Translations under genes and position numbers: made by a program | Shown here: positions 3,101 to 58,655 of the stretch, piece after piece | How the letters are laid out: each line of letters begins with the position of its first letter | How positions within the stretch are numbered: the stretch's first letter is position 1 | Notes under the pieces: model-generated | Seen by the model: the letters and a program-made list of their open reading frames with translations, nothing else | Databases searched by the model: none | What the model was told of the DNA's origin: nothing | NCBI GenBank assembly: GCA_002269645.1 | Contig: NIVC01003919.1 | Coordinates: 1 to 64,000 of the forward strand | DNA: 64,000 bases | Origin: Macrostomum lignano | Lineage: Eukaryota | Reading direction: 5' to 3'

Positions 3101-6100
3101 ATAACCACAAACTAATAACAAGCTAGCAACAAGCCAACAATAAACTGACAACAAACAAACAAACAAAAACTATTTGCAGTCCGACCGTACATCCGGTTTG
3201 CAAGCTACCGATACAATGGCAGGCCAAATGCGATAGACAGGATGTCGGTTATTCATAACGGACAGACCATCACACTGAGCTCTCTGGATTATAACACTGG
3301 ATGGATTACCATAAGCACTTCGACTCCCCCCGCCGTTAAGCTGCATTGGCTGCTGATGGACCTCAAACTGCTACATAATATTTCTGGGATCGAATTCTCG
3401 TCTTACTGTGAGTGAATCCTGAAGCGAGCTGGGATTTTCAATTAAAGTTCTAATCAGAGACATTAAAGATGAATTCAATTTATCGTGCTTTTATACAGTG
3501 AAGGGTATGCATCCCCTCACCGTGCTCGTCGGTAACAACTACGATTCATCCCTCGGAGAGGGCGCATTCAAAGACTGGCAGGTGTGCAGCTCGCTCGAGT
3601 TTTATGTAGCAAATCTGTTGGATTACAGCCTCATCTGTGACAGGCCAATCATCGGAAGATTCGCCGTGCTGACCAGGCCGGCTGATATGGGCCGAATTCA
3701 TATTTATAACCTTCAAGTGCACGGCGAGGAGTGTAAGTTTCTGCTGCAAAGTCAGCGGTTTTGTCACAATGAAATTTCTTGTCCATGATGATTCTAAAGC
3801 AACCTCAATCGTAAATGCAGATTACGTACTCAACAAAGAAGTTGACGTGAGAGTCTACTGGTTCCCGGATGAAGCGATTTCAGAGGCGCTGACAACGCGC
3901 AATGCCACGCTCTTTGTTCGAATGAGATCTAGGCTCACAAAGATCTGGCTAACTGACCAATATGGCTACCTAGAGGCCATGACCAATGTACGTATTTTTC
4001 GAATGTTTTCGTTTCGTGAATCTCTAAATAAAACTTGCGTCTTTGTGCAGTTTGCTCCGCGAATATTTACTTTCAAAACCTCGTGCTTCAGCCGCGGTAC
4101 ATCATCATGCTGAAAGGCAATGGTTTGAGTCAGATCAGCTACGCTGGAGCTGTTGTAGAGCACAAGGACTACTCAATCAATAATGCATCTATCTATACCC
4201 TAGATACGCTTAACAATACACTGAACCAGACCGCACAGGCAAACACGGACGACTTTGTTCGGGTGAGCGTCACCTGGCAGACAGCTGGTGGAGTCACGAC
4301 CATCGCTACCTACGTTGGCGACGTCAAAATTGGCGAGTCTACCGACCAGGTGCACTCCATTGCGGTCAGGAAGGTCGGCTACTCAAATGACGTCAAATGT
4401 AACTCTGACACAAACTTTCATAGCATACAAGTTTACTTCAACGTGCTCAGTAAAAAGACACTGGGGGCTTTTCGATCAACGCACTACCAGGAGTCTTCTA
4501 TTGAACGAATATATATTCAGGTTAGTTTATTAAATGTCATTAACAAAATATGATGATAAACTTGTTCACCGCTTCTGCTGCGTTTCTACTTACTCCCGGG
4601 CCCGAACTTCATGCACATGCAGCTATGAATTCACGTCCAAAAAAGAAAAAATAGATGTGATCGTACGATAATCCTAAATGCAAGAAGTGATTAAAATAGT
4701 CACAAAAGCTCGTAGGTCATTGCTCTATAGATAAGCCAATTCGTACATGTACTCCTCAAAAAAATTCTACAGGCCGCATTCGACAAGATTGTCCGGCTGT
4801 TGTGGATCTCGGTTCAGGGCGGAATCAGCAGTGCAGCCTTCGGCGGTGCGGCTTCAACGACTGGGATGAAAGCTTTTAACATTACCTATAGCGAGAATGC
4901 GCGATACTGGAGAATTTTCTATAACAACAAGGTAGAACATTTAGATAGATATGGTCTAATAATATGAGCATTGTTCAGTTTATGCCTAAATTGTTTTTTA
5001 TTTGAAATAATTTATTCTTGCGTAATTTTCCCGATTTATTTTATATTTTAACTTAGCAACTCGGCGGAATCATGGACAATCCACGCCGGGTCGGCAGCTT
5101 CAGGTTCCTGCCTGACCTGCTGGCCCTTGCAATCCGCGTCTATCCGGCTGCTGTGGTCAACTTTGCCGAGACCAGGCTGCAGCTGTACGGATGCGTGAAT
5201 GGTAAGCCCAGAATTTGTTGCTTGTGGAGTCCCGCAGGTTAGTGGTTTTAGATACTACATGCCGAGCTTGCTTGATACGAAAAAGTGCGTCCGCCAAAGT
5301 ACGTTTTAAAGCTAATTTAAACATTATTTGGATATATAAACAACAGTGAAAATTCTCGATTCCAAAAATTCTTAAAACTCTAAAATATTTTACTACGTTA
5401 AATCTACTACCAGTAGCGTGACGCTAAACTGCGATAATTCTCGACTTTTCTAAAAAGACTAAGACTGTCACACTAGTAGATTGTAAGGATTCAGCTTGCT
5501 TTATAGTGTGATAGCTTGCTTCTAGACTTCAATTTATATCAAAATTATTTTCTATGGAAAAGAGCTACACTTATGTTTTTTTTAATAAAATACTTCAAAT
5601 TCAATCGTTGGTGTGAAATTTTGAAACATTTAATCATTTAAACATCTGATCGAACAGTACAAGTTCGAAGAAAATCGGTGGAGCCATTTTTTCTTTAATC
5701 GATCACATAGATATCGACAAACCATTTTTAGTATATGGATTAACGGATTAGCTTGATTAACGGAACAAATTCAAAATAATACGAGCTAGTGGTTGGAGCG
5801 TCGGACTTACTACTCAAAGGTCGCACTCGGAACGATTTATGTCCTTCAGCAAGACGCTTAACTCTGCATTGATTCACTTCAACCAGCTGTAAAATGGGTA
5901 CCAGGATTAACTAGGGTAATTAAGGGTGGGTATGGCTGAAAGGCGTATGCAGTTGTAAGGATTTAAAGTAAATAAAAGAAAGTGAAAGGAGATAGGCGGT
6001 ATTTTTACATGTTCATCCGCCTCGCCGGACCAGTTGTAGCGGGTTTTTCAGTAATGAGGCGAGAGCAAGGTGGTGTTTCAACTGGTTAATGGGTTTATGG

Positions 6101-7528
6101 AATAATGTTACTGGAATCTAGAAGAAGAAGATTCGTGAAGAGATTCCAGCTGAGCTGCTGTATATTTATAGTGTTGAGATGCTCTTCCGGAAAGTTCTAG
6201 AAATAATGCATTATAACAAAATGATTGTTAAGAAAATACTGCTAGTTATTTATCGCTAGTTTTACCCACAGACTGCGAATACTCGTTAATTATTAAATAT
6301 ATTGAAATGCAGTAAATGAGAAATTGTTTCAGACACAGAACTTTCTAGAAAACGTACGAATAGAAATTTCTCGAAGGTCACTACACAGTCTTTAGATGCG
6401 CTGCGCAATAGCTCGCACAAAAGCTGACATGTCAACTCAAGCCAGCTAAAGTCTGCGCGTGCCTGACAGCGTGAAAGTGTGCTCTATGGTTTGATAGTCA
6501 TTTTAATCTGCAATAAATACTTACGGAACATAGCAACATTACCCTTTACCAAACGGTCGGAAGACTTATATCGTTTGCTCTCTGGTCGGAGCACGAAAAA
6601 ACGACATTGGAGAGCCATTTTTATTCAGATTACGAAGTTTCCAGTTCACAATAACTAAAAAAATAGTAGCAACTAACTATCAGTAGGAAAAAAACAGACG
6701 AGCATAGAAGATAAAATCATTTGCCGGCTGAGCAAACAGACAAGTGGTCTGAGTCAATTCGAAAGGCCTTAAAACCGGGGCGGAGGAGACAGGTAGAGGT
6801 GCACGAAAAGGAAAAAAGCAGGGAGAACGCGCACCTGGGACAGGGCCCGAACGGATATTAAACAGCCTAAAGTCCCCCAAAAAGTGTCAAGCTTACGTCC
6901 AAAAACTTGATGGGCCAGTACCCACGATTTCAAACGACTTTATGATGCGAAATCTTGTTTGGGACGCCAGGAGTGGACCCAGAGGGGGCAGGGGCCATGA
7001 CCCTCCCTCAGCCGTGGCCAAAATATCGGGCCTTACTTTTTTACCTGTAACTATGCATGTAGATTTTCCAATTTTTAGTTTTACTTGCGTGGCATAGCTT
7101 GCCCCTCTCAAATACATTCCGGCTCCATCCCTGGATATCGATGTATCAACTGTAAGTTGAGTTCAAAGTGGTAAGCACAGTGGGTCACACGGGGTGTGTT
7201 TTATAACGCATCTAAAATTCAAACCGCTCACCAAGCAAGTCATGCGTAACACAAAAGTTGAATTGGCTTTTCACTTTGCTTGCAGCCTCCGCAGACATCG
7301 CTCTACCTTACTCGATGGCTCGAGCCAAGAGACGGATTAGCAGCATCGACCCGAGCAGCTACTCGTATATCAACCTGAGGCCGAACGACGGCTACGTTGG
7401 TGCGATCAGCTCTAGCAGTAACTTCTACACGCCGCATCTGGACTTTACCAGGACTTATCACTACTGGATGGTGGACCTGGGCATTGATACCGATATCAGA
7501 TTCATCCGGGTCTACACTTATATTACAA
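133..7528 (+). CDS. Multi-exon gene for a large extracellular mosaic protein, part A (C-type lectin-like, kringle-like and F-type-lectin/discoidin-like exons); partial model that probably starts upstream of the window
   Basis: AG/GT-bounded exons with domain-like translations. 133-345 is CTL-like (W..GVTRNASTGDWFWIDG...YYFACQ, needs one frameshift). ~1607-1752 is kringle-like (C..NRG..YY...NVTREGIACLPW). ~3180-3409 has HWLLMDLKLLHNISGI. ~3498-3730 has C..PIIGRFAVL...NLQVHG. 7295-7528 has RAKRR...YWMVDLGIDTDIRFIRVY. The full exon chain could not be resolved by eye. Confidence 0.55.
408..690. repeat. 27-bp intronic minisatellite (cagttagcatcgcactggtgtaacatc)
   Basis: About 10 degenerate tandem units; explains the 9-aa periodic MLHQCDANW ORF. 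Confidence 0.9.
5783..5935 (+). mobile_element. Degenerate tRNA-derived SINE, family 2
   Basis: Body tccttcagcaagacgcttaactctgcatt...ccagctgtaaaatgggtaccag matches the reverse-strand copy at 46572-46713; the upstream part is tRNA-like. Confidence 0.6.
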
Positions 7529-10038
7529 GTACGTTATACTGACAGTAATATAAGGGGTGTGTGTGTGTGTGTGTGTGTTTGTGCATTAGGCATTTCTTGG
7601 GACAAGCGTGTATAAACTGACCCGTGCTATTAGGACCAAAAATGTGTTGGGCCAGGCCCAATAAGTGCGTCCCGACACTTCCAAAAATGAATTCTATTGA
7701 AATGAAAAAATATTCATTGGAACCGTCTTTCGATTCTCCTTTCAAAAATCAATGTCATTTTTTCATATTTTTAATCAAACACAAGGAATATAATGATTTG
7801 CAGTGTCCTAAGAAGTTTAAAAAATTATGCGAACTGATGGTCTGATCCAACAGAACAATTGGGTCTTAAATCGGAATTCTCGTTTTATTACAATATTTCT
7901 TACAATATCAAGAAAGTCTACTACAAGTAACAGATAGAGGTTCTCCACAGGGCTGCCAATCGACACTTGAAAGGATCCTGACATTTGGCATCGTGTTTAC
8001 TATAAAATATGAAATAATTTAATAAAGATTTAGAATATTACAATCAAGCATACAAACCTTATAGATTTAGTATATTTAGATTTTTGCATAGAAACAGCTA
8101 GCATCTAAATTCATTAGCTTCCAATTTCACTTATACACGAAACATGGCAAATTAAGGTTACATCCGCCTGTGCCCTCGGCCATTTTAACTGAAATTCTCG
8201 TTTTCAGTCAGCTGCATTAATCTATTTGTCATATGTGAATGGGTATTAACTGACTCAAGTTAGTGACTGGAGGCCATTAACGTAAAGTGACACTTTGAGT
8301 GAGGTAGTTTTCCGGTGGAAATTCTCACAGTCTTATGAAGCGCTTTTAGAGCAAAGAAATAAAGGGCAAAGAAAAACTTTGCATTTCCCGAGAAAACCGA
8401 GGACGAGTATTAGAGGGAAACGTTTAATCTCTAAGGCTTCAAATGACTTCCTTATTGGCCTGGGTTCGGGCAGCTATACTATGTAGCAAAATTTTTCCTA
8501 GAATTATGATAATTTTATCGTCTGGTATACTGAAAAGTACGGAGATACCAAGAAACTTAAGATGACTGCATGGACTGCTAGCACATGTTTGAGTGTCACT
8601 GTCACTGTAAAGTCGAAATCGATGACTAGTTGGCCCCTAACTACTAGGCCTTCCTGGAAAACAATTCTGCTTATCTTGGATCGTAAAGATAAACCCACGT
8701 ACAGTGCAGAAGTGTTAGGACAAGCGTGTACAAGACCCAGGCAATCCCTTACCCAGGCCACGCGTACATTCCTATCGCGGCGGGGGGAAGCGGGGAGGAG
8801 AGGCGGGCGCAAGGGAGTCAGGATAAAGTTTACACTGAAGTTGAGGCCTACAAGAGGAAGAGCCAATTCTAACGGAAAGGTACATGTAGAAGTTCCCTTT
8901 GACAAAAGGCGTACTGGCGGTACTGCATATGTTCAAACGAATATAATTCATTTACGAGACCTGCACTACACAGACAAATTGTGCCACGTCACAAGAGTTT
9001 CCATGCATGACCTGGCATGAAAAGACTTGGCTAGGAACCATTACACATATGTAAGTAGAATTTAAAATTCTTTTTAAAATTTTATGATTAAATAAAAACT
9101 TAACTGGAATTTACATATGTACTTTTCTAAAATTCCAGATACGTTGATATCGATAAGCTACCGTTTTCTTCTATAACAAACAGATTTGCCTTCATTGTCC
9201 AGTAAGTATTGTCTCGTACTCGTATATGTCGTATTTTTGTACGTTGAAAAAAATAATTAGCAGCCTAGTAATACTCTGAGCTCAGTGAAATATAAGAGAG
9301 GCGGCACGATCACCTTATTTATCAATTAATTTACAACAGCACTACACAGCACTCATAAGTAGGCAAAATTTACACTTCTAGGAAGAACAAATTTTACTAA
9401 AAGTTTCAATCAAAACATTTAGGAAAGAAATCTCGCATAACACATCGCCCACAGTACTAGAGACTTGGAGAAATACCATGTGAGTTTGCTGGGCAACTAA
9501 TATAATATATTACTGTTATAATTCGATAGTCAAATTATTTTTCTACTCAAAGCAGTATTATTACATAACTAAAGAACAGTATAAAATGACAGCATTCTAG
9601 AACGAGAAACAAAGCTTACTGCAAAGGCAAACGCCGAAAGAAAAGCAGGGCAGAGTCAGCAACAAAAAAGAAGCTCATCTGATTGGGAAGATGGGCGGTC
9701 AGCAAAGAGATAGGATCTCAGAAAATTGCAACTCCCAGTAACTGAAACTTAATTGCAATAAGTGTTTTGTTTTCTAGGGCATTATTAAAACAAGCAAGCC
9801 TGCCTGCAGTCAGCTAAGGGCAAAGTAAGTTGCTGCGGCACTATCGAGAAAGTGAAATTTGTACTCCATCTAACTGACACAAGCAGCACCGTTGGGACAA
9901 ACTACGAGTATTTTAATTGTACAGTAAAATTTCATTGACAATGAAGCATTTATTAGAACAGCGACATTTAAATCTGTTTTCAAACAAATCAAAAAGATTT
10001 CTCAATAAATGATTTTTCTTTTGTGCGCTCACGCACAG

Positions 10039-10735
10039 GTTCGTCCGCATTCAAACTCGCCGCTGCATCCGTCATTTGGTTCACTTGCTGCTCACAAGCC
10101 GCAGCAGCAGCAGCAGCAGCAGCAGCCGCTATCCGTGCAGGCAGTCAGTCTATTTGTGAATTTTCTGGTCGATCTGAAGAAAACCCGTCCGGCACAGGAT
10201 TAAAGAGAAAGAGACGATCTGTTTTGGGTGAGTATTATCTGCTGTAGAAGTATTGTACACCAGAGTACTTGTGTTACTTGGTAGAGCACAATTCAAAAGC
10301 AATGCAACAATCTCAGTGGCATTGTTGGGACACAAGCTACAAACGCAATGAATAGTAAACACAGCCCAGCCTAGCTCAAGGCTAGTAATTTGTTGGGCAT
10401 TTATTGGGACATTGCAGCCAGGCCTATTTTTTGAACAGCATTTGTTGGGTCGCACTTATTGGGACAATACTGATTCTAATCGCGACTACTTCTGAGTTCT
10501 GACTTTTCAAAACAGACCCAGCATTAGTTGAACACGTTCTATTAAAGGGTTCCTTTATAGCCTATTAATGATTACTAAGCAAGCCTATCTTAATTGATTT
10601 CTTTTCCTCGCAGATTCTGAAGTCAGCCACGCCAGCGACATGCCTAAGAGACAAGAATGCGCTTTAACGATCAGCAGCGAGCATTCTGATCTCGCCGCTG
10701 CATCCGTCATTTGGTTCACTTGCTGCTCACAAGCC

Positions 10736-10768
<33 letters not shown>

Positions 10769-13700
10769 GCTATCCGTGCAGGCAGTCAGTCTATTTGTGA
10801 ATTTTCTGGTGGATCTGAAGAAAACCCGTCCGGCACAGGATTAAAGAGAAAGAGACGATCTGTTTTGGGTGAGTATTATCTGCTGTAGAAGTATTGTACA
10901 CCAGAGTACTTGTGTTACTTGGTAGAGCACAATTCAAAAGCAATGCAACAATCTCAGTGGCATTGTTGGGACACAAGCTACAAACGCAATGAATAGTAAA
11001 CACAGCCCAGCCTAGCTCAAGGCTAGTAATTTGTTGGGCATTTATTGGGACATTGCAGCCAGGCCTATTTTTTGAACAGCATTTGTTGGGTCGCACTTAT
11101 TGGGACAATACTGATTCTAATCGCGACTACTTCTGAGTTCTGACTTTTCAAAACAGACCCAGCATTAGTTGAACACGTTCTATTAAAGGGTTCCTTTATA
11201 GCCTATTAATGATTACTAAGGCAAGCCTATCTTAATTGATTTCTTTTCCTCGCAGATTCTGAAGTCAGCCACGCCAGCGACATGCCTAAGAGACAAGAAT
11301 GCGCTTTAACGATCAGCAGCGAGCATTCTGATCTCGCCGCTGCATCCGTCATTTGGTTCACTTGCTGCTCACAAGCCGCAGCAGCAGCAGCAGCAGCAGC
11401 AGCAGCCGCTATCCGTGCAGGCAGTCAGTCTATTTGTGAATTTTCTGGTGATCTGAAGAAAACCCGTCCGGCACAGGATTAAAGAGAAAGAGACGATCTG
11501 TTTTGGGTGAGTATTATCTGCTGTAGAAGTATTGTACACCAGAGTACTTGTGTTACTTGGTAGAGCACAATTCAAAAGCAATGCAACAATCTCAGTGGCA
11601 TTGTTGGGACACAAGCTACAAACGCAATGAATAGTAAACACAGCCCAGCCTAGCTCAAGGCTAGTAATTTGTTGGGCATTTATTGGGACATTGCAGCCAG
11701 GCCTATTTTTTGAACAGCATTTGTTGGGTCGCACTTATTGGGACAATACTGATTCTAATCGCGACTACTTCTGAGTTCTGACTTTTCAAAACAGACCCAG
11801 CATTAGTTGAACACGTTCTATTAAAGGGTTCCTTTATAGCCTATTAATGATTACTAAAGGCAAGCCTATCTTAATTGATTTCTTTTCCTCGCAGATTCTG
11901 AAGTCAGCCACGCCAGCGACATGCCTAAGAGACAAGAATGCGCTTTAACGATCAGCAGCGAGCATTCTGATCTCGCCGCTGCATCCGTCATTTGGTTCAC
12001 TTGCTGCTCACAAGCCGCAGCAGCAGCAGCCGCTATCCGTGCAGGCAGTCAGTCTCTTTGTGAATTTTCTGGTGGATCTGAAGAAAACCCGTCCGGCACA
12101 GGATTAAAGAGAAAGAGACGATCTGTTTTGGGTGAGTATTATCTGCTGTAGAAGTATTGTACACCAGAGTACTTGTGTTACTTGGTAGAGCACAATTCAA
12201 AAGCAATGCAACAATCTCAGTGGCATTGTTGGGACACAAGCTACAAACGCAATGAATAGTAAACACAGCCCAGCCTAGCTCAAGGCTAGTAATTTGTTGG
12301 GCATTTATTGGGACATTGCAGCCAGGCCTATTTTTTGAACAGCATTTGTTGGGTCGCACTTATTGGGACAATACTGATTCTAATCGCGACTACTTCTGAG
12401 TTCTGACTTTTCAAAACAGACCCAGCATTAGTTGAACACGTTCTATTAAAGGGTTCCTTTATAGCCTATTAATGATTACTAAAGGCAAGCCTATCTTAAT
12501 TGATTTCTTTTCCTCGCAGATTCTGAAGTCAGCCACGCCAGCGACATGCCTAAGAGACAAGAATGCGCTTTAACGATCAGCAGCGAGCATTCTGATCTCG
12601 CCGCTGCATCCGTCATTTGGTTCACTTGCTGCTCACAAGCCGCAGCAGCAGCAGCAGCAGCAGCAGCAGCCGCTATCCGTGCAGGCAGTCAGTCTATTTG
12701 TGAATTTTCTGGTGGATCTGAAGAAAACCCGTCCGGCACAGGATTAAAGAGAAAGAGACGATCTGTTTTGGGTGAGTATTATCTGCTGTAGAAGTATTGT
12801 ACACCAGAGTACTTGTGTTACTTGGTAGAGCACAATTCAAAAGCAATGCAACAATCTCAGTGGCATTGTTGGGACACAAGCTACAAACGCAATGAATAGT
12901 AAACACAGCCCAGCCTAGCTCAAGGCTAGTAATTTGTTGGGCATTTATTGGGACATTGCAGCCAGGCCTATTTTTTGAACAGCATTTGTTGGGTCGCACT
13001 TATTGGGACAATACTGATTCTAATCGCGACTACTTCTGAGTTCTGACTTTTCAAAACAGACCCAGCATTAGTTGAACACGTTCTATTAAAGGGTTCCTTT
13101 ATAGCCTATTAATGATTACTAAGGCAAGCCTATCTTAATTGATTTCTTTTCCTCGCAGATTCTGAAGTCAGCAACGCCAGCGACATGCCTAAGAGACAAG
13201 AATGCGCTTTAACGATCAGCAGCGAGCATTCTGATCTCGCCGCTGCATCCGTCATTTGGTTCACTTGCTGCTCACAAGCCGCAGCAGCAGCAGCAGCAGC
13301 AGCAGCAGCCGCTATCCGTGCAGGCAGTCAGTCTATTTGTGAATTTTCTGGTGGATCTGAAGAAAACCCGTCCGGCACAGGATTAAAGAGAAAGAGACGA
13401 TCTGTTTTGGGTGAGTATTATCTGCTGTAGAAGTATTGTACACCAGAGTACTTGTGTTACTTGGTAGAGCACAATTCAAAAGCAATGCAACAATCTCAGT
13501 GGCATTGTTGGGACACAAGCTACAAACGCAATGAATAGTAAACACAGCCCAGCCTAGCTCAAGGCTAGTAATTTGTTGGGCATTTATTGGGACATTGCAG
13601 CCAGGCCTATTTTTTGAACAGCATTTGTTGGGTCGCACTTATTGGGACAATACTGATTCTAATCGCGACTACTTCTGAGTTCTGACTTTTCAAAACAGAC

Positions 13701-15195
13701 CCAGCATTAGTTGAACACGTTCTATTAAAGGGTTCCTTTATAGCCTATTAATGATTACTAAAGGCAAGCCTATCTTAATTGATTTCTTTTCCTCGCAGAT
13801 TCTGAAGTCAGCAACGCCAGCGACATGCCTAAGAGACAAGAATGCGCTTTAACGATCAGCAGCGAGCATTCTGATCTCGCCGCTGCATCCGTCATTTGGT
13901 TCACTTGCTGCTCACAAGCCGCAGCAGCAGCAGCGCAGCAGCAGCCGCTATCCGTGCAGGCAGTCAGTCTATTTGTGAATTTTCTGGTGGATCTGAAGAA
14001 AACCCGTCCGGCACAGGATTAAAGAGAAAGAGACGATCTGTTTTGGGTGAGTATTATCTGCTGTAGAAGTATTGTACACCAGAGTACTTGTGTTACTTGG
14101 TAGAGCACAATTCAAAAGCAATGCAACAATCTCAGTGGCATTGTTGGGACACAAGCTACAAACGCAATGAATAGTAAACACAGCCCAGCCTAGCTCAAGG
14201 CTAGTAATTTGTTGGGCATTTATTGGGACATTGCAGCCAGGCCTATTTTTTGAACAGCATTTGTTGGGTCGCACTTATTGGGACAATACTGATTCTAATC
14301 GCGACTACTTCTGAGTTCTGACTTTTCAAAACAGACCCAGCATTAGTTGAACACGTTCTATTAAAGGGTTCCTTTATAGCCTATTAATGATTACTAAAGG
14401 CAAGCCTATCTTAATTGATTTCTTTTCCTCGCAGATTCTGAAGTCAGCAACGCCAGCGACATGCCTAAGAGACAAGAATGCGCTTTAACGATCAGCAGCG
14501 AGCATTCTGATCTCGCCGCTGCATCCGTCATTTGGTTCACTTGCTGCTCACAAGCCGCAGCAGCAGCAGCAGCAGCAGCAGCAGCCGCTATCCGTGCAGG
14601 CAGTCAGTCTATTTGTGAATTTTCTGGTGGATCTGAAGAAAACCCGTCCGGCACAGGATTAAAGAGAAAGAGACGATCTGTTTTGGGTGAGTATTATCTG
14701 CTGTAGAAGTATTGTACACCAGAGTACTTGTGTTACTTGGTAGAGCACAATTCAAAAGCAATGCAACAATCTCAGTGGCATTGTTGGGACACAAGCTACA
14801 AACGCAATGAATAGTAAACACAGCCCAGCCTAGCTCAAGGCTAGTAATTTGTTGGGCATTTATTGGGACATTGCAGCCAGGCCTATTTTTTGAACAGCAT
14901 TTGTTGGGTCGCACTTATTGGGACAATACTGATTCTAATCGCGACTACTTCTGAGTTCTGACTTTTCAAAACAGACCCAGCATTAGTTGAACACGTTCTA
15001 TTAAAGGGTTCCTTTATAGCCTATTAATGATTACTAAGGCAAGCCTATCTTAATTGATTTCTTTTCCTCGCAGATTCTGAAGTCAGCAACGCCAGCGACA
15101 TGCCTAAGAGACAAGAATGCGCTTTAACGATCAGCAGCGAGCATTCTGATCTCGCCGCTGCATCCGTCATTTGGTTCACTTGCTGCTCACAAGCC

Positions 15196-15228
<33 letters not shown>

Positions 15229-16459
15229 GCTATCCGTGCAGGCAGTCAGTCTATTTGTGAATTTTCTGGTGATCTGAAGAAAACCCGTCCGGCACAGGAT
15301 TAAAGAGAAAGAGACGATCTGTTTTGGGTGAGTATTATCTGCTGTAGAAGTATTGTACACCAGAGTACTTGTGTTACTTGGTAGAGCACAATTCAAAAGC
15401 AATGCAACAATCTCAGTGGCATTGTTGGGACACAAGCTACAAACGCAATGAATAGTAAACACAGCCCAGCCTAGCTCAAGGCTAGTAATTTGTTGGGCAT
15501 TTATTGGGACATTGCAGCCAGGCCTATTTTTTGAACAGCATTTGTTGGGTCGCACTTATTGGGACAATACTGATTCTAATCGCGACTACTTCTGAGTTCT
15601 GACTTTTCAAAACAGACCCAGCATTAGTTGAACACGTTCTATTAAAGGGTTCCTTTATAGCCTATTAATGATTACTAAGGCAAGCCTATCTTAATTGATT
15701 TCTTTTCCTCGCAGATTCTGAAGTCAGCCACGCCAGCGACATGCCTAAGAGACAAGAATGCGCTTTAACGATCAGCAGCGAGCATTCTGATCTCGCCGCT
15801 GCATCCGTCATTTGGTTCACTTGCTGCTCACAAGCCGCAGCAGCAGCAGCCGCTATCCGTGCAGGCAGTCAGTCTATTTGTGAATTTTCTGGTCGATCTG
15901 AAGAAAACCCGTCCGGCACAGGATTAAAGAGAAAGAGACGATCTGTTTTGGGTGAGTATTATCTGCTGTAGAAGTATTGTACACCAGAGTACTTGTGTTA
16001 CTTGGTAGAGCACAATTCAAAAGCAATGCAACAATCTCAGTGGCATTGTTGGGACACAAGCTACAAACGCAATGAATAGTAAACACAGCCCAGCCTAGCT
16101 CAAGGCTAGTAATTTGTTGGGCATTTATTGGGACATTGCAGCCAGGCCTATTTTTGAACAGCATTTGTTGGGTCGCACTTATTGGGACAATACTGATTCT
16201 AATCGCGACTACTTCTGAGTTCTGACTTTTCAAAACAGACCCAGCATTAGTTGAACACGTTCTATTAAAGGGTTCCTTTATAGCCTATTAATGATTACTA
16301 AGGCAAGCCTATCTTAATTGATTTCTTTTCCTCGCAGATTCTGAAGTCAGCAACGCCAGCGACATGCCTAAGAGACAAGAATGCGCTTTAACGATCAGCA
16401 GCGAGCATTCTGATCTCGCCGCTGCATCCGTCATTTGGTTCACTTGCTGCTCACAAGCC

Positions 16460-16492
<33 letters not shown>

Positions 16493-17836
16493 GCTATCCG
16501 TGCAGGCAGTCAGTCTATTTGTGAATTTTCTGGTCGATCTGAAGAAAACCCGTCCGGCACAGGATTAAAGAGAAAGAGACGATCTGTTTTGGGTGAGTAT
16601 TATCTGCTGTAGAAGTATTGTACACCAGAGTACTTGTGTTACTTGGTAGAGCACAATTCAAAAGCAATGCAACAATCTCAGTGGCATTGTTGGGACACAA
16701 GCTACAAACGCAATGAATAGTAAACACAGCCCAGCCTAGCTCAAGGCTAGTAATTTGTTGGGCATTTATTGGGACATTGCAGCCAGGCCTATTTTTTGAA
16801 CAGCATTTGTTGGGTCGCACTTATTGGGACAATACTGATTCTAATCGCGACTACTTCTGAGTTCTGACTTTTCAAAACAGACCCAGCATTAGTTGAACAC
16901 GTTCTATTAAAGGGTTCCTTTATAGCCTATTAATGATTACTAAGGCAAGCCTATCTTAATTGATTTCTTTTCCTCGCAGATTCTGAAGTCAGCCACGCCA
17001 GCGACATGCCTAAGAGACAAGAATGCGCTTTAACGATCAGCAGCGAGCATTCTGATCTCGCCGCTGCATCCGTCATTTGGTTCACTTGCTGCTCACAAGC
17101 CGCAGCAGCAGCAGCAGCAGCAGCAGCCGCTATCCGTGCAGGCAGTCAGTCTATTTGTGAATTTTCTGGTCGATCTGAAGAAAACCCGTCCGGCACAGGA
17201 TTAAAGAGAAAGAGACGATCTGTTTTGGGTGAGTATTATCTGCTGTAGAAGTATTGTACACCAGAGTACTTGTGTTACTTGGTAGAGCACAATTCAAAAG
17301 CAATGCAACAATCTCAGTGGCATTGTTGGGACACAAGCTACAAACGCAATGAATAGTAAACACAGCCCAGCCTAGCTCAAGGCTAGTAATTTGTTGGGCA
17401 TTTATTGGGACATTGCAGCCAGGCCTATTTTTTGAACAGCATTTGTTGGGTCGCACTTATTGGGACAATACTGATTCTAATCGCGACTACTTCTGAGTTC
17501 TGACTTTTCAAAACAGACCCAGCATTAGTTGAACACGTTCTATTAAAGGGTTCCTTTATAGCCTATTAATGATTACTAAGGCAAGCCTATCTTAATTGAT
17601 TTCTTTTCCTCGCAGATTCTGAAGTCAGCAACGCCAGCGACATGCCTAAGAGACAAGAATGCGCTTTAACGATCAGCAGCGAGCATTCTGATCTCGCCGC
17701 TGCATCCGTCATTTGGTTCACTTGCTGCTCACAAGCCGCAGCAGCAGCAGCAGCAGCAGCAGCAGCCGCTATCCGTGCCGGCAGTCAGTTAATTGATGAG
17801 TTTTCTGGCGGAGCTGGTTATTTTTTAAGTTTCTGA
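10039..17836 (+). repeat. Tandem array of ~625-642-bp exon+intron units (13 copies of the (GCA)n core)
   Basis: Near-identical units; MPKRQ-frame starts at 10640, 11282, 11921, 12546, 13185, 13825, 14461, 15100, 15741, 16364, 17006 and 17642, plus a first unit with a unique 5' end. Units differ mainly in (GCA)n length. Confidence 0.97.
10039..17836 (+). CDS. Tandemly repeated phase-1 exons (DSEVSHASDMPKRQEC...IWFTCCSQ(A)nIRAGSQSICEFSG.SEENPSGTGLKRKRRSVL); the last unit reads on to a stop at 17836
   Basis: Units 2-13 carry the acceptor tttcttttcctcgcag|ATTCTG; the first unit has acgcacag|GTTCG. Units 1-12 carry the donor TTTTGG|gtgagt. The exon at 10614-10868 is 255 nt (a multiple of 3), and only the phase-1 frame is open. 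The last unit lacks the donor and ends ...GGAGYFLSF*, with aataaa shortly downstream. Confidence 0.7.
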
Positions 17837-17984
17837 ATCGAGAAGCCGATTAACTGTTGTGTGCTTCACTGGAATATTATTCAGAGGACGCATTTTTTTG
17901 CAGTCTGTTTCTAATAAAATCCGGTGCAATGACCGCGGTAGAGCTCTAGCATTTGCTTTTTATAGTATTTGTGTATATTCTTTT

Positions 17985-18130
17985 TCAAGCTATGCTGGAA
18001 TTGTTGGGACAGCCCCATCCACACTGGCTATGGTGGAATTGTTGGGACAGCCCTATCCACACTGGCTATGGTGGAATTGTTGGGACAGCCCTATCCACAC
18101 TGGCTATGCTGGAATTGTTGGGACAGCCCC
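17985..18130. repeat. Short minisatellite (ggctatg(g/c)tggaattgttgggacagccc(t)atccacact)
   Basis: About 4 tandem copies just after the exon array. Confidence 0.8.
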
Positions 18131-18905
18131 ATACTATAGTGTGTGCTGGCTTCTGCTATAGTGTGGTTCATTTCCGCATCCTTTTACGTAGCATTCTGTG
18201 GGTCCGAATAGCTGACATGTACCTTTTGAGTAATTCTAGTGATTGTGTCATAATCAATAAAGTACATTTTTATGAACAGTGGAGTTTCGCTACAGAATTG
18301 TTTTTTTCCCAGTGGCACTAAATGTAGCAAATTTTGTTTATTCAGATCGTAAAATTTTTTTGATATGTGTCAATGTCGTTTGTTTTCGATAACCTTAAAG
18401 TCCCTTGCCATTTACCATCCTGTCTTCTATAATCTATGATCGCTGAAATTATCCTGTGAAATTTGACGCGCTGATATTATTGCCTTAAGTGGAATTCAGC
18501 AAGACACCAGGGTTTTTTAATTCTGTTTTAGACAAGTATACATGTACAATCTGTTGTGAGTTCAATGCACCTCGAAAAATGCTTTCCAACTGTTTTCAGT
18601 AAGCCAAAAGCATGTTGTCAATAAAAATCGATTTGGTGGGTTGAAAATTGCCCGTGTGGGGACGTGTGTGTGTGTGATTTTTCGTGTGTCGGAGCAGTCC
18701 CAATATGTGCAAGCTTTTGCACACTTGGCCAATAAGTGCCTCGTGCACGTTTGTGTGTGTGTGCACGTGTGTGTACAAAAGGGCCCTATCAGCACATGGG
18801 TTTTTTACAATTTAAGAGTGTAAAGGTATCCTGGCAAAGTGATTTAAAAACCGAATTTATTGTAGGTTTTTTGCTTCTGTAAATTGCTTTATGGCTTATT
18901 ATTCG

Positions 18906-19182: not shown

Positions 19183-19443
19183 TAGATTCCTGTTACAATA
19201 TTTTTATAATATTTGATTAAAAATGCCTCGGAGAGTACTTTCATTTTTCCGCTTACATGTCTGGCATAGCATTTTTACATTTTACCTTCACATACTTCGC
19301 TCAACATAGTACTCATATGGAACAAGCAAAGGTTTAATTTGCTATTATGGAATTTAAAATTTGAAGAACTAGTCAATTTAGTGCCCCAAAATTGAGCAGC
19401 GCCATTCCAAATGTACATAAAACTTATCCCTGATGACTTTTAG

Positions 19444-19720
19444 CTGGTTACGGCCATGACGTATGCGGCACTGTGTCCTACAAGAACTACTATGGCTTGC
19501 AGAATGTAACCGTAGGAGGCCTGGCCTGCCAGAACTGGAGCAGCTCCGGACCGCACACCATACCCTACCAGTGCCAGCTTGATGCAAACTTTCCAGGAGA
19601 TGGCGCCAAGAACCGCTCTAGAAACTATTGTCGCAATTGCGAGAGCAAAGATTTTTACTACTGCTACACAATGGACCCGACTGTGCCGTTTCAGGCCTGT
19701 GAGGTGCTGCCCTGCAACAG
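19444..19720 (+). CDS. Kringle-domain exon
   Basis: Acceptor ttttag at 19443. Translation C...YYGLQNVTVGGLACQNW...H...NFP...RNYCRNC....YCYTMDPTVPFQACEVLPC shows the kringle Cys pattern with NYCRN and CYT motifs. The 3' splice boundary is uncertain. Confidence 0.85.
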
Positions 19721-20642
19721 GCAGTCAATGCACTACGGTTTGTACAGACAATCAATCAGAGCAATCAGAAACACACAGCTGGCTGGCGAGGGTGCTGGAA
19801 TATAAGAATTGTTTATCCGTGGTCATAGGTTCATCTAAACTTGGGGTTTTCCAAACCGTGGCGTCTGCAACTGACTACTGCAATTTGCCTGCCACAAATT
19901 GACTGTAAACCCTAAACCCTGTGCTTCTACATGGATTAACTGGTTTTCAAGTCTTATAAATCTTTTTCTGCATCAACCCTAGTGGTAGAAAACTGAACGA
20001 ATGCAGGTACTCATGGTTTTAATTGTTGTGTAGCAATAGCTTTGTCCATATTTCCTAACGCTTGTTAAAATATTGGCAACTTGACTAGGCATGGCTCTGC
20101 TCGTCATTGGTTGTTTCTACGACTTATACGAGTAGTCCGCATATGAGCAGAATAATATATTCCTTCATCCATGCTCCGTAGAACAAATTACGCTCGTATC
20201 TTCATTGTATCGGCTTCCGGTGATTTAATCATAAATGGTTTCTTACTGCCCTAATTGTTCTGCTGTGTTTTGTCAAAAAACTTTCAAGATGTAGAATGCA
20301 TTTTTGGATACTTAAAGATAACAACAACTAACTAAAATACTATTGATTTCAGATTACGAATATTTGGATCACTCAGAAATATTCATTTCGAATAGCTCTG
20401 CCGTCGAGAGTCCTGCAGTAAAGGTGGTCAGCAGACATACCGTTGGTCCCCAAAGGAGCGATACTGGATGGTACCATCTATCAATCAGGTATGAATACTT
20501 ATGATTCGTTTTAGAAGTTATTGTGCATCAGTTTAGACATCCGAGTGATTTTTCTAGGCCGCCGTTAAATCGTTCAGGCTAGTTTGAGTAAAAGTCATAG
20601 CAAAATTGAAATGAAAATAAAGCTAGCTTTGTTGAAATTCAG

Positions 20643-22753: not shown

Positions 22754-22980
22754 GGGGGGCCGTAGCCCAGCGGTAGCGCAGCTGCTCTGGTGTGCCAGCG
22801 ACCCAGGCTCGATTCCAAGTGCAGTCACATTAATTTGGGGCTGAATTGGAATCTCGGCTTGGCTCTGCTCGTGCAATTAACGGCCTTGAGGGCCAACCCC
22901 CCAAGGCGCAGTGAAGTGTACATGCCTAACGATAAATAAAGTTAGGGCCGCTGTACACTCCTGTGTGAGTGTGTGCCTGC
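22754..22980 (+). mobile_element. tRNA-derived SINE, family 1, 5' half (interrupted by the P element)
   Basis: Head GGGGCCGTAGCCCAGCGGTAG...GGCTCGATTCC has Pol III A/B-box-like motifs; near-identical to the intact copy at 36875-37236. Confidence 0.85.
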
Positions 22981-25900
22981 CACAGACCAAGAAATATAAC
23001 TAGACTGCGCATGAGGGTAAAAAAAGTTGTGCCTTTTTCCTAGTAGGAAAAGTGGCACCCCAGTGCCCACTCCCCCACGATCGATAATTGTGCCCGGGCC
23101 TTTCTTCTTACCCTCAGCCAACTCAGCTTGTCGGGGTCTCTTTTTTTTATGTTCGTAACTAGTGAAAATTCAGACTCAGTAAGAAATAGGATTAACAAAT
23201 CAACAACTACAGATTCATTTTTAATTTATCTAGAATTTTTTGCACGCATTTAATGGCAAATATATAGTTTATCACGGGAATAAGCTTAAACAGAATCCAT
23301 TGAAGCCATAACTTACCAGCTTCCATATTCGGATACGCTGATTACAAATTAAGAAAAATCGATGTTCGAAGCAGCCTTTGCCTCTTGCCGGGTTTTCTTC
23401 CAGCGCGTGAAAGATCCTTAGCCAGCTTCTTCATTCGAATATTTATAAAAAGCATAGCCATTACTCGAATCAAATGCAGCTTGTGAGACTCAATGCTGAT
23501 ACTCGCGGATGCCGAATGAGAGTCCAGTTCAGGGAACAGATCGATTGACATGCGCAGAATCTCCTGAACAGCTACATCACTAGAGAATCCGCTGCTGTAG
23601 CTGGCACGCCGAACAACAGTCTCTGCATTGAGCAGCACCCGCAGGACATTGCTGCTAGGAAAAATCAGGCCGCCAGTTCCTTCCTTGTTCAAAACATTTT
23701 TATGGCAACGAGTGAGCATGGTCCGCGTGAAGCTCCTGGCGTCTCAGAGCTTGCGATCAGAGCTGACCTGCACGGAGCACATTCAACTGCTTTCATCATT
23801 CTTCGGACGACCGCGCCTGCGATATAGCACACGATGGACTGGCAAATTTCACACACCGATGCATTCTTGCAGTGTTGGATTGAACCCAGACTCAGTCCCA
23901 TTTCATTTTGAGCTTTCATCTGCTTCCATGGCTGCTGTCCTGATGATGATGGCAGACAAGACAATGATAACTGAATAGTGGCATCCTGCTGCCTCACATT
24001 CGGACTCACGGACTGTAGAATTCCACCTCCGGCATGCACCAACAGCTGCCTGAATGCTGAGCGAAATTGCGTGGGCGTTGGGTTATGGTTCCAGCCATTT
24101 CGTAGCCTTACTGCATTAAAAAACAGTTCGAGAAAATCCTGCGAAAGCTTGTAAGTGCAAAGAAAGAAGAATTCGCCAGTCGAAAATAAATACTTAGCGA
24201 GCTCCATAATGCCATGGCAGTTGGTGATGAAGCCTAGGAAGCCAGTCTTCTTTGCGGTTTCTACTATCTTACAGCCAGCCGGAGTTTCAAGGCTACGGAG
24301 AAGTTCGATCGAGCTAGAGAAGAAATCGATCCAATCCGACTGATTGTCAGCTCTAAGCGCCATTTTGGCGCCATAACTGACCAGCCGCTTGGAATTGAAA
24401 GCGTCGAACAAATCATTCATGTGCTCAACGAAATCTGCGGTGACTAGCACATCAGAGTGCTCAAATCCGATCACACCTTGCTGATGCACCCATCGCAAAG
24501 AGTCGGCCACTGACTTGCTAAACAGTTGTGATGCCAAATAGACCTTCATCTTTAAATTAGCAAAGTTGATGTGATGCCTGCTTAACTTGTTTCCAAGTCG
24601 GAGTCCATGACTTTCTTGTACTTGCTGCAACATGGAAACATATTTCCATTCAATATTTCCTCTGTTCGGCCAAACAAATCTTCCCAGTGACTGCCACTGA
24701 TTGCGAATCAGCTTTAACATGTGAGGCACATCCAGGAAGGCTGCAACCTGAATGCTAGGATCGCAGGGGTGCGGGAAGCAGGCGACGACCTCGTTCGGAG
24801 AACTTATCCTGGAGCCAAGGAGTTCGATCGCTCGAATGTTGTGCTGAGTTCCATCGCATGTGAATGATGTTGCTATGACGCCAACCTGGTACAGTCGCTG
24901 AATGGATTCCTCTACAACGCTCGAAAGAAATTCGCCGTCAACTCCATTCACTAGAAAATACCCTAAAGGCAGCTTCCAATAGCTCTTAAGCCCCACTGCC
25001 ATCACTACCAGTGCCGAAGACGCCTCCTGATCACTTGGTTTGCCATCACCTTTGTCAACGTAGCCAAAAAACATACCTTCGCTTGAATTCCATTCAATCA
25101 TCGACTCTAGCGACATTTCATCAGCAACAACGTTGCAGTAGTCAAAGGCTTGGCCGTCAGTGGAGCTGCGTCGCCGCGAAAGTTCCTGGAAAGCCTGATC
25201 GCAAAACCCTGGAAAGCACTTTGCATTTGAGAGCCATTTTCTAAGTGACGCAGGATGTGGAAGCTGAAAGTACTTTCGTACATACTCATAAGCCTTCGGA
25301 CTATAGAAATGCAATGTAGAGGCGAATTTGCGCACTTCGTCAGAGAACCTCTTTGTCCTTTTTCTATTGCAAGGCACGATGCTGCTCAGCAGTGAATCGG
25401 AGGTCAAGAAATTCAATCGAGATGCCGCTGCTTCGTTTAACATGCACTTGGCCTTTAGATCCAGAATTGCGTCCTTCAATGTTTTGGCTCTATGTTTAAT
25501 TTGCCTGTGCTTTGAGCGCAGAGATCGAATTTTTCTGTACTTGCTCTGTACCGTCCGACGCAGGATTTCAATGGCCTTAGCACTTTTCTTAGATCTCTTA
25601 TGAGCAGCCAAAAGCCTTTTGTATCTGCGCCTCAGGTTTTTTAGGACTCTCACCTTTTCTTCGAATAGTTCTCTGGCCACACAGTTGGCATGCAGTTCTT
25701 GTAGGGGTTGTTCTGGTTCATCTGCCTCCGTGTCAGTTGGCTGAGCCTTCGTCTTGCTACATTCCGGCGCTTTCAAAAATGCAGCAAAGTCAACTTCCTG
25801 AGCAGCGGCGGCGGCGGTGGCTGTTTTTCGCTTCTTTTCAACAGGCTGCAGGCGGTCAGGGAGCGTCGGGAAGATAGAAGGAACAGCATTTGGATACAGC

Positions 25901-26463
25901 CGCCTTCTTGTGGTGGGCAGAAAGCCGGCTAGTTGTTCCTTGAAGCAAGACTCTGCAAAGTGGACCGAGCAGACTTGGGTGGTCGCCGATGGTTTGAACT
26001 CCTTGCGTCGGAGCGCAACCAGCCACTTTCTCTTCATTTCAGTGTCTTTTGGAAAAAAATGGAAGGACACTGCCGGAGACATTGACGAGTTGTTCGAGCA
26101 GCCTAGAGCGCAGCAAAAGCTGCCGTGACTTTTTCTGCTAGGCAGTTTTGAAGAATTAGATTCTTCCATGGCAGTTCGATTTGGTGAGGATTGATTTAGA
26201 TTAGACTGAAGCAGCTTGCTTTGTATTTCAAGTATGTGTTTTATAAGTTTATATTTTTGGCCCCAGACCACTTTAATATATAGCTACATATCAACGCAGG
26301 CGGAAAGAAAAGCAGGCCTGTACCCTAACTTCTTGCCCAAGCACAATTATCGATCGTTTTCGAGTAGGGAGAGAGGGACCATTTTTTCCACTGTCATTTG
26401 GTCAAAAACAAGCCCAAGCAAGAAATGCGGGATGCGCAGTCTAGTTATATTTCTTGGTCTGTG
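22981..26463 (-). mobile_element. P-element-superfamily DNA transposon, full length (3483 bp)
   Basis: Perfect 32-bp TIRs (cacagaccaagaaatataactagactgcgcat at 22981-23012 and its complement at 26432-26463). 8-bp TSD gtgcctgc at 22973-22980 and 26464-26471. Internal 16-bp inverted repeat at 23078-23093 / 26341-26356. Confidence 0.95.
23342..26169 (-). CDS. THAP-domain P-element transposase with one frameshift near 23700
   Basis: N-terminal THAP (CCALGC...FHFFP...KWL...VCSVHF) and P-transposase motifs ADEM, TCDG, DVPHMLKLIRN, SQDFLELFF. The C-terminus (GGLIFPS...) continues in another frame after an A-run. Confidence 0.9.
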
Positions 26464-26606
26464 GTGCCTGCGTACGTATCCGCGCGCTTGTATGCCTGCT
26501 CAGGGGAGTCGGCGAAATGGGCAGTAATGCCTCTCGCCGGTTGTGTGACAATGTCGCTTGAAGTGCGCCAGGGTGCACACAACCCCCTGCCTCTAATAAA
26601 AAAAAA
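26464..26606 (+). mobile_element. tRNA-derived SINE, family 1, 3' half with A-tail
   Basis: Continues the SINE sequence after the TSD and ends aataaaaaaaaa. The flanks ttccat(aa/cc)agtttaa resemble a degenerate SINE TSD. Confidence 0.85.
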
Positions 26607-29771: not shown

Positions 29772-30320
29772 GCCTTCTAAAGCGTGCTCCCTTACCTCAA
29801 TATAGAGGTAAATTTTTGCAGAAAGTATACCAGGGGCATACGAGTATATCGGTAGGTATTAAAAGTTCGTCTGCGATCAAAAACCATTGGTTGCTAAACG
29901 TACATGTAATCGGAATAATTCAATGTATTTTTTCAGCGGCAATAAACTTGAAGACACTATCTCTCAGTAATAATATAAACGTTGCATCTTCTTAATAGAA
30001 CTAGTCGTTGCAAGAGACATGCCTCCGGCAATGGTGCGGACGCTTCAATTTTGTTGTGTACGCTCGTATGGACTTTTGGTTTAGCAAATGCACTAATGCT
30101 TCCCTTCTTTTGTCTATAGTCTAGGGTACAATCTTTTATTTCTTTAAGAGCCGAAGGCTAACAGTATTACAAAAAGGCAAGCAAGACGTGCGCTAGCTAG
30201 AGGCAAATAAAGCTTGTGAACAGCTCGTATTTTAAATAATGCTTCTTCGACTTGACTTTGATGTCAGATGGTAGCCTGGAGGCAATAGTCGGTATAGAAG
30301 CAGAAGAAGAGGACATAACA

Positions 30321-33994: not shown

Positions 33995-34916
33995 CGCTGG
34001 ATTTCAGAAGGGAGAAAGAGAACAGATGGATTCCTGCCGAGGTGGTCACCCGCACAGGACCAATGTCTTACAGACTGCAGGTCAACGGTCAAATCTGGAA
34101 GAGGCACGTTGATCAAATTGTCAAGACAGACGTTCTTCCCACCCGAATTCCACCAATCATGAAGAGGCATCAGGACGATCAGACTGATATATTCCTGCAC
34201 GGTCACGAGTGCGGGAATGACATCTGCACGAGTGCGCGCTAGCGCACGAGTGCACGATGTCCTTCACGCACGAGTGACCGTGAAGGAATTCCATTGTCGG
34301 GTGATTCATCGTGCAGGAATGCACAAAACCGTGCAGGAATGCATTTCTGCGCCTAATGCTTTTTCAGTGAGATTTTACCATAGACATCCATTCCTGCACG
34401 CAAAAGAGTGCAAGAATGCCATTCTTGCATGGAAAATCAGCCGACAATGACTTGGCTCGTGAGCAAATGCAGAGTGAGGACATCTCAAATCCAGCAACCC
34501 AAAGCGTGCCCGTGCAAGACGAACCACAGACAACCGACTCAGACGGAACTCGTGGCAAGAGCACTGACACATCGGCTAAAGAACCTAGACGACTGAGGGA
34601 CAGAGACAAATTGCAGAAACCGGACCGGTTGAGATATTAATTGACAAAGGGGGGAATGTTGTGTATGGACTTTTGGTTTAGCAAATGCACTAATGCTTCC
34701 CTTCTTTTGTCTATAGTCTAGGGTACAATATTTTATTTCTTTAAGAGCCGAAGGCTAACAGTATTACAAAGGGCAAACAAGACGTGCGCCGGCTAGAGGC
34801 AAATAAAGCTTGTAAACAGCTCGTATTTTAAATAATGCTTCTTCGACTTGACTTTGATGTCAGATGGTAGCCTGGAGGCAATAGTCGGTATAGAAGCAGA
34901 AGAAGAGTACATAACA

Positions 34917-49402: not shown

Positions 49403-58655
<9,253 letters not shown>

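Follow-up and report, generated by a model that had tools for sequence, protein, structure and literature searches.

Positions 10039-17836 of a 64,000-nt stretch of the Macrostomum lignano genome (contig NIVC01003919.1 of assembly GCA_002269645.1; hereafter the whole stretch is called the window) are occupied by 13 exon-like units arranged head to tail. The locus raises the following question: do these units, spliced together, encode a polyprotein that is cut into many near-identical peptides, as was proposed earlier from the letters alone (the sequence-only reading), or do they form a spliced repeat whose reading frame is not maintained by selection? We favor the second answer and assign a probability of about 0.58 to the reading that the array is a young, M. 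lignano-specific, spliced exon-intron macrosatellite with a module frame that is unconstrained or decaying.

The start-to-start spacing of the units is 624-642 bp, each unit comprising a complete exon with an acceptor and a donor, plus an intron. Twelve acceptors of the form ttttcctcgcag^ATTCTG and twelve donors of the form TTTTGG^gtgagtat (carets mark splice junctions or cleavage points) were found between positions 10039 and 17836, in agreement with the 13 units with strong splice sites described in the sequence-only reading. The internal donor-bearing exons span 237-255 nt, the array intron is 386 nt long, and the codon split as G^AT at each junction makes the exons phase-1/phase-1. The exons had been called symmetric, but three of the twelve donor-bearing exons (3, 7 and 9) are asymmetric, and the start of exon 1, that is, its acceptor and its first 17 nt, is unique rather than repeat-derived. 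At the other end, the last unit diverges after ...TTTTCTGG[C/T]GGA. Units of one locus are ~99-100% identical, and in nearly all units of the window, intron segments of 300 nt match at 100%. A strict six-unit higher-order repeat, hinted at by the spacing, by a deletion shared by two exons and by the units with Ala7, was considered and rejected, as the H/N, G/R and I/L variants form a mosaic.

The module frame reads DSEVS[H/N]ASDMPKRQECALTISSEHSDLAAASVIWFTCCSQ(A)7-13IRAGSQS[I/L]CEFSG[G/R]SEENPSGTGLKRKRRSVL and includes the stretch SVLDSEVSHASDMPK, and the C-terminus encoded by the terminal exon reads ...GAGYFLSF. At the module boundary, 12 of the 13 units encode K-R-K-R-R^S, an R-X-K/R-R site at which cleavage is predicted only; the KRKRR string is coded by the purine-rich AAGAGAAAGAGACGA, which ends 10 nt 5' of the donor. 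One frame is open and carries the module, as had been claimed, but the 13 units are copies of one sequence, hence the open frame counts as a single observation. The phase-compatible module frame is open in 5.7% of dinucleotide shuffles (p ~0.06), and at least one frame is open in 16% of these shuffles and, among other segments of 252 nt in the region, in 19%. Taken alone, the open frame is weak evidence.

The same array is present at two other loci of the independent Mlig_3_7 assembly, with 8 units on contig NIVC01000487.1 (L001) and at least 17 units on contig NIVC01001277.1 (L002), where the contig end cuts the array. Thus, the array is not an assembly artefact, and the scenario of an assembly expansion of one or two real copies, which could have refuted the sequence-only reading, is ruled out. 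Given 8, 13 and at least 17 units at the three loci, the array length is unstable; copy-number variation, which was to be looked for between individuals, is seen between loci. The coordinates of the features are collected in Table 1.

Table 1. Features of the array and of the block that carries it, in window coordinates.
Feature	Coordinates	Strand	Description
Tandem array proper	10056..17815	+	~12.1 units of ~640 bp; the first unit is homologous to internal units from 10056 onward
Exon 1	10039..10227	+	189 nt; acceptor cacgcacag^; no ATG; module frame reads SSAFKLAAASVIW...KRKRRSVL
Exon 2	10614..10868	+	255 nt, intact; first ATG at 10640
Exon 3	11256..11506	+	251 nt; frameshift GG>G in TTCTGGTGGATC; reads ...EFSGDLKKTRPAQD, then stop
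Exon 4	11895..12131	+	237 nt; Ala7; I>L variant
Exon 5	12520..12771	+	252 nt, intact
Exon 6	13159..13410	+	252 nt, intact
Exon 7	13799..14046	+	248 nt; frameshift, 1-nt deletion within (GCA)n run
Exon 8	14435..14686	+	252 nt, intact
Exon 9	15074..15327	+	254 nt; 1-nt deletion identical to that of exon 3
Exon 10	15715..15951	+	237 nt; Ala7; G>R variant
Exon 11	16338..16592	+	255 nt, intact
Exon 12	16980..17228	+	249 nt, intact
Terminal exon	17616..17918	+	module diverges to ...SQLIDEFSGGAGYFLSF; TGA stop 17834-17836; AATAAA 17913-17918
Block carrying the array	7558..18759	+	~11.2 kb; recurs at L001 with sharp ends and unrelated flanks
Block 5' end	7576..7612	+	imperfect inverted-repeat arm (TGTGCATTAGGCATTTCTTGGGACAAG) beside (GT)n run
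Block 3' end	18690..18759	+	second imperfect inverted-repeat arm (CGTGCACGAGGCACTTATTGGCCAAG), then GT-rich run
38-bp minisatellite	17989..18132	+	3.8 copies, within block; carries TTGTTGGGAC core, also found three times per array intron
Exon-like ORF with RAKRR	7295..7528	+	outside block; not shown to be part of the array transcript

The earlier inference that the units are spliced together agrees with public gene models. In a protein search, 25 M. lignano protein models match the array modules (E-values down to 1e-238), and many of them join modules as predicted (...KRKRRSVL-D-SEVSHASDMPKRQEC...); model P0001 consists of six modules, and P0002, of five modules, ending in GAGYFLSF. Two models are GenBank entries of the Mlig_3_7 assembly, BOX15_Mlig026960g1 (P0007) and BOX15_Mlig003618g1 (P0009). 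P0007 joins three units at the predicted donors and acceptors with the junctions ...KRKRRSVL^A^SEVS..., and conceptual splicing of L001 at the predicted sites reproduces this model except for the length of one Ala run. The Mlig_3_7 annotation rests on RNA-seq processed with StringTie/TACO and on a de novo transcriptome (PMC5730564); hence the use of the splice sites in RNA is supported by RNA-seq-derived gene models, the evidence being the models and not the reads.

Most of the models do not follow the module frame to its end. Approximately half of the junctions in the public models use alternative, frame-changing sites, switching between the poly-Ala and poly-Gln frames. In exon 2, an alternative acceptor (10677^10678) and alternative donors (10784^10785 and 10827^10828) yield junctions that match public models: IRAG^N, IRAG^T, KKT^H and RRSVL^ASILIS. 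At least 17 of the ~28 public models end at frame-shifted stops (after ...KKTRPAQD or ...RYPCRQSVYL), and the natural stop is reached by only two, P0002 and P0007, which end like the terminal exon of the window. Three models begin exactly at the first base of exon 1 (V[R/H]PHSNSPL). In M. lignano, the spliced leader ends in ATG, ~30% of genes are trans-spliced, and operons are present (PMC8629364). Joined to exon 1, the spliced-leader ATG leads into the poly-Gln frame, with a stop within exon 1, and the three models use that same frame, which is consistent with a trans-spliced 5' end.

The reading frame is not continuous in the window. The RNA spliced from the 13 exons contains four consecutive ORFs of 151, 312, 151 and 311 amino acids, because exons 3, 7 and 9 are frameshifted. 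Since exons 3 and 9 share one deletion, this frameshift has spread between units of the array by copying. Upstream of the array, neither a start codon nor a signal-peptide exon was found, and exon 1 itself is devoid of ATG; the first ATG is internal to a module, and the hydrophobic stretch that comes after it is long and atypical (Kyte-Doolittle, KD, 11-residue maximum 1.9-2.05).

Nor does the pattern of substitutions point to maintenance of the frame. Across 31 aligned units drawn from the three loci, substitutions occupy 13 of 390 intron columns vs 11 of 259 exon columns (Fisher p = 0.53). Nine of the 12 exon changes are nonsynonymous and three synonymous; with nonsynonymous sites constituting 76%, the ratio of nonsynonymous to synonymous rates (dN/dS) is ~0.94. 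A TGG>TAG nonsense change is present in 10 of the 14 L002 units, hence the array kept growing after the nonsense mutation. When consensus units are compared between loci, introns differ by 0.8-1.0% and exons by 0.4-1.3%. Thus, judging by dN/dS, by the equal rates in exons and introns and by the amplified nonsense allele, we see no purifying selection on the modules. Together with the frameshifted exons, the four separate ORFs, the truncated models and the missing upstream start, this leaves the polyprotein of 13 near-identical peptides unsupported for this locus and doubtful for the family.

In our preferred explanation, one ~640 bp cassette, that is, a ~250-nt exon with strong splice sites and a 386-nt intron rich in TTGTTGGGAC motifs, would have been amplified inside the ~11.2 kb block by unequal recombination, through which the array would both grow and shrink. 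The block, which behaves like a mobile or a segmentally duplicated unit, would itself have spread by copying to several unlinked genomic sites. The spliceosome would treat every unit as an exon, the array being spliced because every unit carries strong splice sites. The locus would yield polyadenylated multi-exon RNAs, probably starting at the acceptor 10038/10039, possibly via spliced-leader trans-splicing. The module frame would be a relic or a proto-gene unmaintained by selection, frameshift and nonsense alleles having been amplified alongside the intact ones, and the window locus would yield nothing longer than short products of 2-4 modules, and thus no polyprotein of 13 modules. The observations at the base of this scheme are that the copy number differs by locus, that units are homogenized within loci, that neighboring units are cis-spliced in gene models, and that the array closes with a terminal exon that has a stop and a poly(A) signal.

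Several observations weigh against the neutral interpretation. Exons 10-13 of the window retain an intact ORF of 311 amino acids that runs to the natural stop, and P0001 and P0002 are intact over 5-6 modules. The 1-nt deletions could in principle be assembly errors; a deletion shared by two units and a nonsense allele that is a G>A substitution argue against such an origin. A diverged family of M. lignano proteins (family B, as opposed to family A of the array) keeps the modular ORF, the exon phases and several sequence blocks, which is more than simple neutral decay predicts. Finally, divergence between loci is 2.0-3.4% in the upstream part of the block (7558-10038), ~1% in the units (exon and intron alike) and 0.5% in the downstream part (17837-18759). 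The lower divergence of the units compared to the upstream part could reflect gene conversion among loci or, alternatively, constraint acting on entire units.

Family B (P0029, P0031; UniProt A0A1I8HX90) has the module ASKVSNASDMPKREDSTSTINSEHSDIADALATSCLLAAQEQQQTLLMQTGCSQSIDDLSCGAKDNSSGKGLKRKRRSVL, a comparable terminal exon (...CGAGFFIVSES), ~50% identity to family A and the same exon phases. It retains the blocks S.VSNASDMPKR, SEHSD, SQSI and GLKRKRRSVL, of which GLKRKRRSVL and SDMPKR, identical in P0031, are conserved best, and lacks the VIWFTCC/poly-Ala core; a microsatellite seems to be read as Gln in this family. Therefore, the module with C, CC, C, an Ala tract and RKRR-S, described from the letters alone, holds for the window units, whereas in family B its Cys/poly-Ala core is absent and its basic sites are kept. 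Family B was found via predicted proteins, so that only open copies are visible.

The conservation of these blocks is the main reason to consider a secreted repeat precursor cut by furin-type convertases at KRKRR^S and perhaps at PKR^Q, with the window locus as a partly degenerate member making products of 2-4 modules. The conserved product could then be the 14-mer SVL[D/A]S[E/K]VS[N/H]ASDMP encoded across the exon junction, and the copy number would evolve by cassette amplification. KRKRR is encoded in nearly all units of the window, the exon phases carry the ORF across the junctions, and intact models of five and six modules exist. Two models are named 'Secreted protein' in UniRef, and the N-terminus MPKRQ...LAAASVIWFTCCSQAAAAAAA^IRAG resembles, by inspection, a long signal peptide, with the KD values given above. 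On the other hand, this possibility has to accommodate the amplified frameshift and nonsense alleles, dN/dS close to one and exons that change as fast as introns; most models are cut short by frame changes, a start or signal exon was not found upstream, and the spliced-leader ATG is in another frame. As the conserved blocks lie at exon ends and the code for KRKRR is near the donor, splicing rather than cleavage may be what conserves them, with AAGAGAAAGAGACGA possibly acting as a splicing enhancer. A role as a cleavage site is possible for KRKRR, judging by its retention in family B. Overall, we regard the convertase-processed precursor as unlikely, yet as the alternative that survives best.

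The outcome of the homology searches also speaks against the precursor. No homolog outside M. lignano was found in a search of 5.8 billion proteins and in an exhaustive HMMER search of 1.84 billion representatives, two databases that probably lack the proteomes of other Macrostomum species. The sole HMMER match outside M. lignano, a bacterial PKD-repeat protein, was rejected as spurious. A Pfam scan of the modules, of the exon at 7295-7528 and of the block ORF 8562-9020 produced nothing above the threshold, a PDB sequence search with the five-module model gave no match, and the AlphaFold2 single-sequence model of 2.5 modules had a mean pLDDT of 42 and no confident fold, and is thus uninformative.

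A more elaborate version envisages a flatworm-specific secreted peptide factory, in which the 14-residue SVL[D/A]S[E/K]VS[N/H]ASDMP would be freed after KRKRR and before KR, the Cys/Ala part would serve as a spacer, and cassette amplification would tune dose and diversity, while alternative 5' splice sites (ACCC^GTCCGG and GGCA^GTCAGT) would restore the frame past the frameshifted cassettes. We consider this version improbable.

Comparably improbable is the proposal that the function resides in the intron or in the DNA, that is, in an array of TTGTTGGGAC sites bound by a protein or in an intron-borne small RNA of a snoRNA-host-like gene, or that the block is a non-autonomous transposon with an exonized internal satellite. 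The window contains 42 occurrences of the motif TTNTTGGGMC vs 1.1 expected, an approximately 40-fold excess, and all of them are within 7594-18124: at the 5' end of the block, three times per array intron and in the 38-bp minisatellite. Segments 7558-10049 and 17741-18759 of the block match L001 positions 4420-6900 and 11401-12458, respectively; the homology breaks off at identical bases in the two loci, nothing similar was found further out, and the flanking sequences show no relation over 4-9 kb. The 5' arm resembles the reverse complement of the 3' end, forming imperfect inverted termini of ~26-32 nt. Moreover, as mentioned earlier, whole units including the intron diverge less between loci than the upstream part of the block. 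Against this stand the absence of Rfam matches at E<=1 save one at the chance level and the folding of the intron, which does not differ from that of shuffled sequences (z = -0.49); no clear target-site duplication was seen, the GT-rich flanks obscuring any that may exist, no transposase is encoded in the block, and both ends are seen at two loci only. A small-RNA host-gene array of the SNORD116 type was considered and rejected, as neither Rfam nor intron folding revealed a structured intron RNA.

The surroundings of the block deserve a comment. An exon with a Kringle domain is located just downstream, at ~19442-19790 on the forward strand (Pfam E=1.2e-11), and its acceptor is compatible with the donor of the ORF at 7295-7528, both being phase 1. 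The two exons may thus belong to a host gene that carries the block in an intron; neither of them is contained in any M. lignano protein model, and the intronic insertion was not confirmed. The RAKRR site of the upstream ORF had been noted alongside the array sites. This ORF lies outside the block shared with L001 and has neither a Pfam match nor a match among protein models.

Another possibility is a polycistronic RNA from which spliced-leader trans-splicing at each acceptor releases the units as individual small genes. Every unit has an ATG (ATGCCTAAGAGA) 26 nt past the acceptor and ATTAAA in the intron, ~70 nt before the next acceptor, M. lignano has both trans-splicing and operons (PMC8629364), and many public models start at MPKRQ. 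However, none of the ~28 public models reads through a donor, which would give ...RRSVLGEYYLL and a stop, and P0007, an RNA-based model, splices the units in cis. These facts make independent small genes very improbable. The least credible option is that LAAASVIWFTCCSQ(A)n is a membrane anchor and KRKRR a stop-transfer or nuclear-localization signal, as the sequence-only reading had suggested as its alternative: a hydrophobic stretch is indeed followed by a basic cluster ~35 residues on, but its KD 19-residue maximum of 1.51 is below the usual cut-off of 1.6, S and Q residues break the stretch, family B does not retain the segment (KD maximum 0.57), and the evidence for neutral evolution applies here too.

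In kind, the array most resembles exon-bearing tandem repeats and ORF-bearing macrosatellites. The LPA kringle IV-2 and NBPF Olduvai exon arrays similarly have units of whole exons plus introns, near-identical introns, phase-compatible exons and copy numbers set by unequal recombination. These, however, are conserved, selected genes with recognizable domains, whereas the M. lignano module has no known domain, occurs in a single species, bears no sign of purifying selection and is broken by frameshifts. The D4Z4/DUX4 and RS447/USP17 macrosatellites share with our array the long period, an ORF in each unit, variable copy number, homogenization and a doubtful or conditional coding value; each of their units is a self-contained gene, while the units here are exons joined to one another by splicing and, at 0.64 kb, are much shorter.

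The similarity to convertase-processed repeat precursors, such as nematode polyprotein allergens of the ABA-1 type and multi-copy neuropeptide or antimicrobial precursors, e.g. apidaecin, consists in tandem near-identical modules parted by R-X-K/R-R sites; the differences are the absence of a sequence or structure match, the interrupted ORF, the failure to find a signal-peptide exon, the lack of constraint and the introns between modules. Schistosome micro-exon genes are likewise flatworm-restricted, with symmetric exons and combinatorial splicing of secreted products, but their exons are 6-36 nt long and mutually different, whereas ours are near-identical copies of 237-255 nt. In the Pacific oyster, Helentron-associated satellite-like arrays are reported to be carried by non-autonomous mobile elements (PMC7492417). 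Here too a satellite-like array of varying length sits in a block that has defined ends and recurs at unlinked loci; the difference is that the M. lignano block showed neither Helitron/Helentron hallmarks nor a relation to a transposase, that its termini form only imperfect inverted repeats, and that its units carry an ORF and are spliced as exons.

As regards the naming of the models, P0008, P0014 and P0020-P0025 are array-only ORFs that carry the UniRef names Rho-GAP, Dymeclin, UCH or BAF250_C domain-containing, yet these domains are absent. The odd names may come from array copies in or beside the respective genes, or may be a naming artefact. Neither the searchable literature nor two supplementary files mention the gene identifiers Mlig026960 and Mlig003618, and a literature search retrieved no paper on this repeat family.

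Other parts of the window are also rich in mobile and repeated sequences. A P-element-like DNA transposon at 22980-26464 is bounded by terminal inverted repeats of 33 bp that match perfectly (22980-23012 and 26432-26464), and its transposase ORF of 860 amino acids (23689-26271, reverse strand) is intact and includes THAP, P-element HTH, RNase H-like and GTP-binding insertion domains. Its flanks share (G)TGCCTG, resembling a target-site duplication, and it appears to be a recently active copy. Kinship between the block and this neighbor was considered and rejected, as its inverted repeats are unrelated to the block ends. A gypsy-type long terminal repeat (LTR) retrotransposon occupies 30066-34916, with 255-bp LTRs of 96.9% identity and gag/protease, reverse transcriptase/RNase H and integrase split over the ORFs 30252-31625, 31730-33499 and 33515-33994. 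Exons of tubulin-folding cofactor D (Pfam ARM_TBCD, ARM_TBCD_2nd and TFCD_C) are found on the reverse strand at ~50000-58600 and 60223-60594; introns of this gene are packed with minisatellites of 19-32 bp in 20-40 copies each, and an exon of a nucleoside 2-deoxyribosyltransferase-like (DNPH1-type) protein adjoins it. Tandem Repeats Finder reported 53 rows for the whole window (overlapping rows represent the same array), many with periods of 19-38 bp and 15-40 copies. This very high density of minisatellites agrees with the estimate that simple and tandem repeats constitute ~15% of the M. lignano genome (PMC5730564).

If the neutral reading is true, a cassette with strong splice sites has been amplified into a 'gene-like' multi-exon array that is transcribed and spliced, and such arrays have been annotated as dozens of 'uncharacterized' or 'secreted' proteins, which would be a warning for the annotation of repeat-rich genomes; the locus could then be a snapshot of gene birth or gene death. 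If, vice versa, the minority reading of a processed precursor is true, the family would represent a new lineage-restricted design of peptide precursors in a model organism for regeneration. In either case, the public models of this family need to be re-evaluated.

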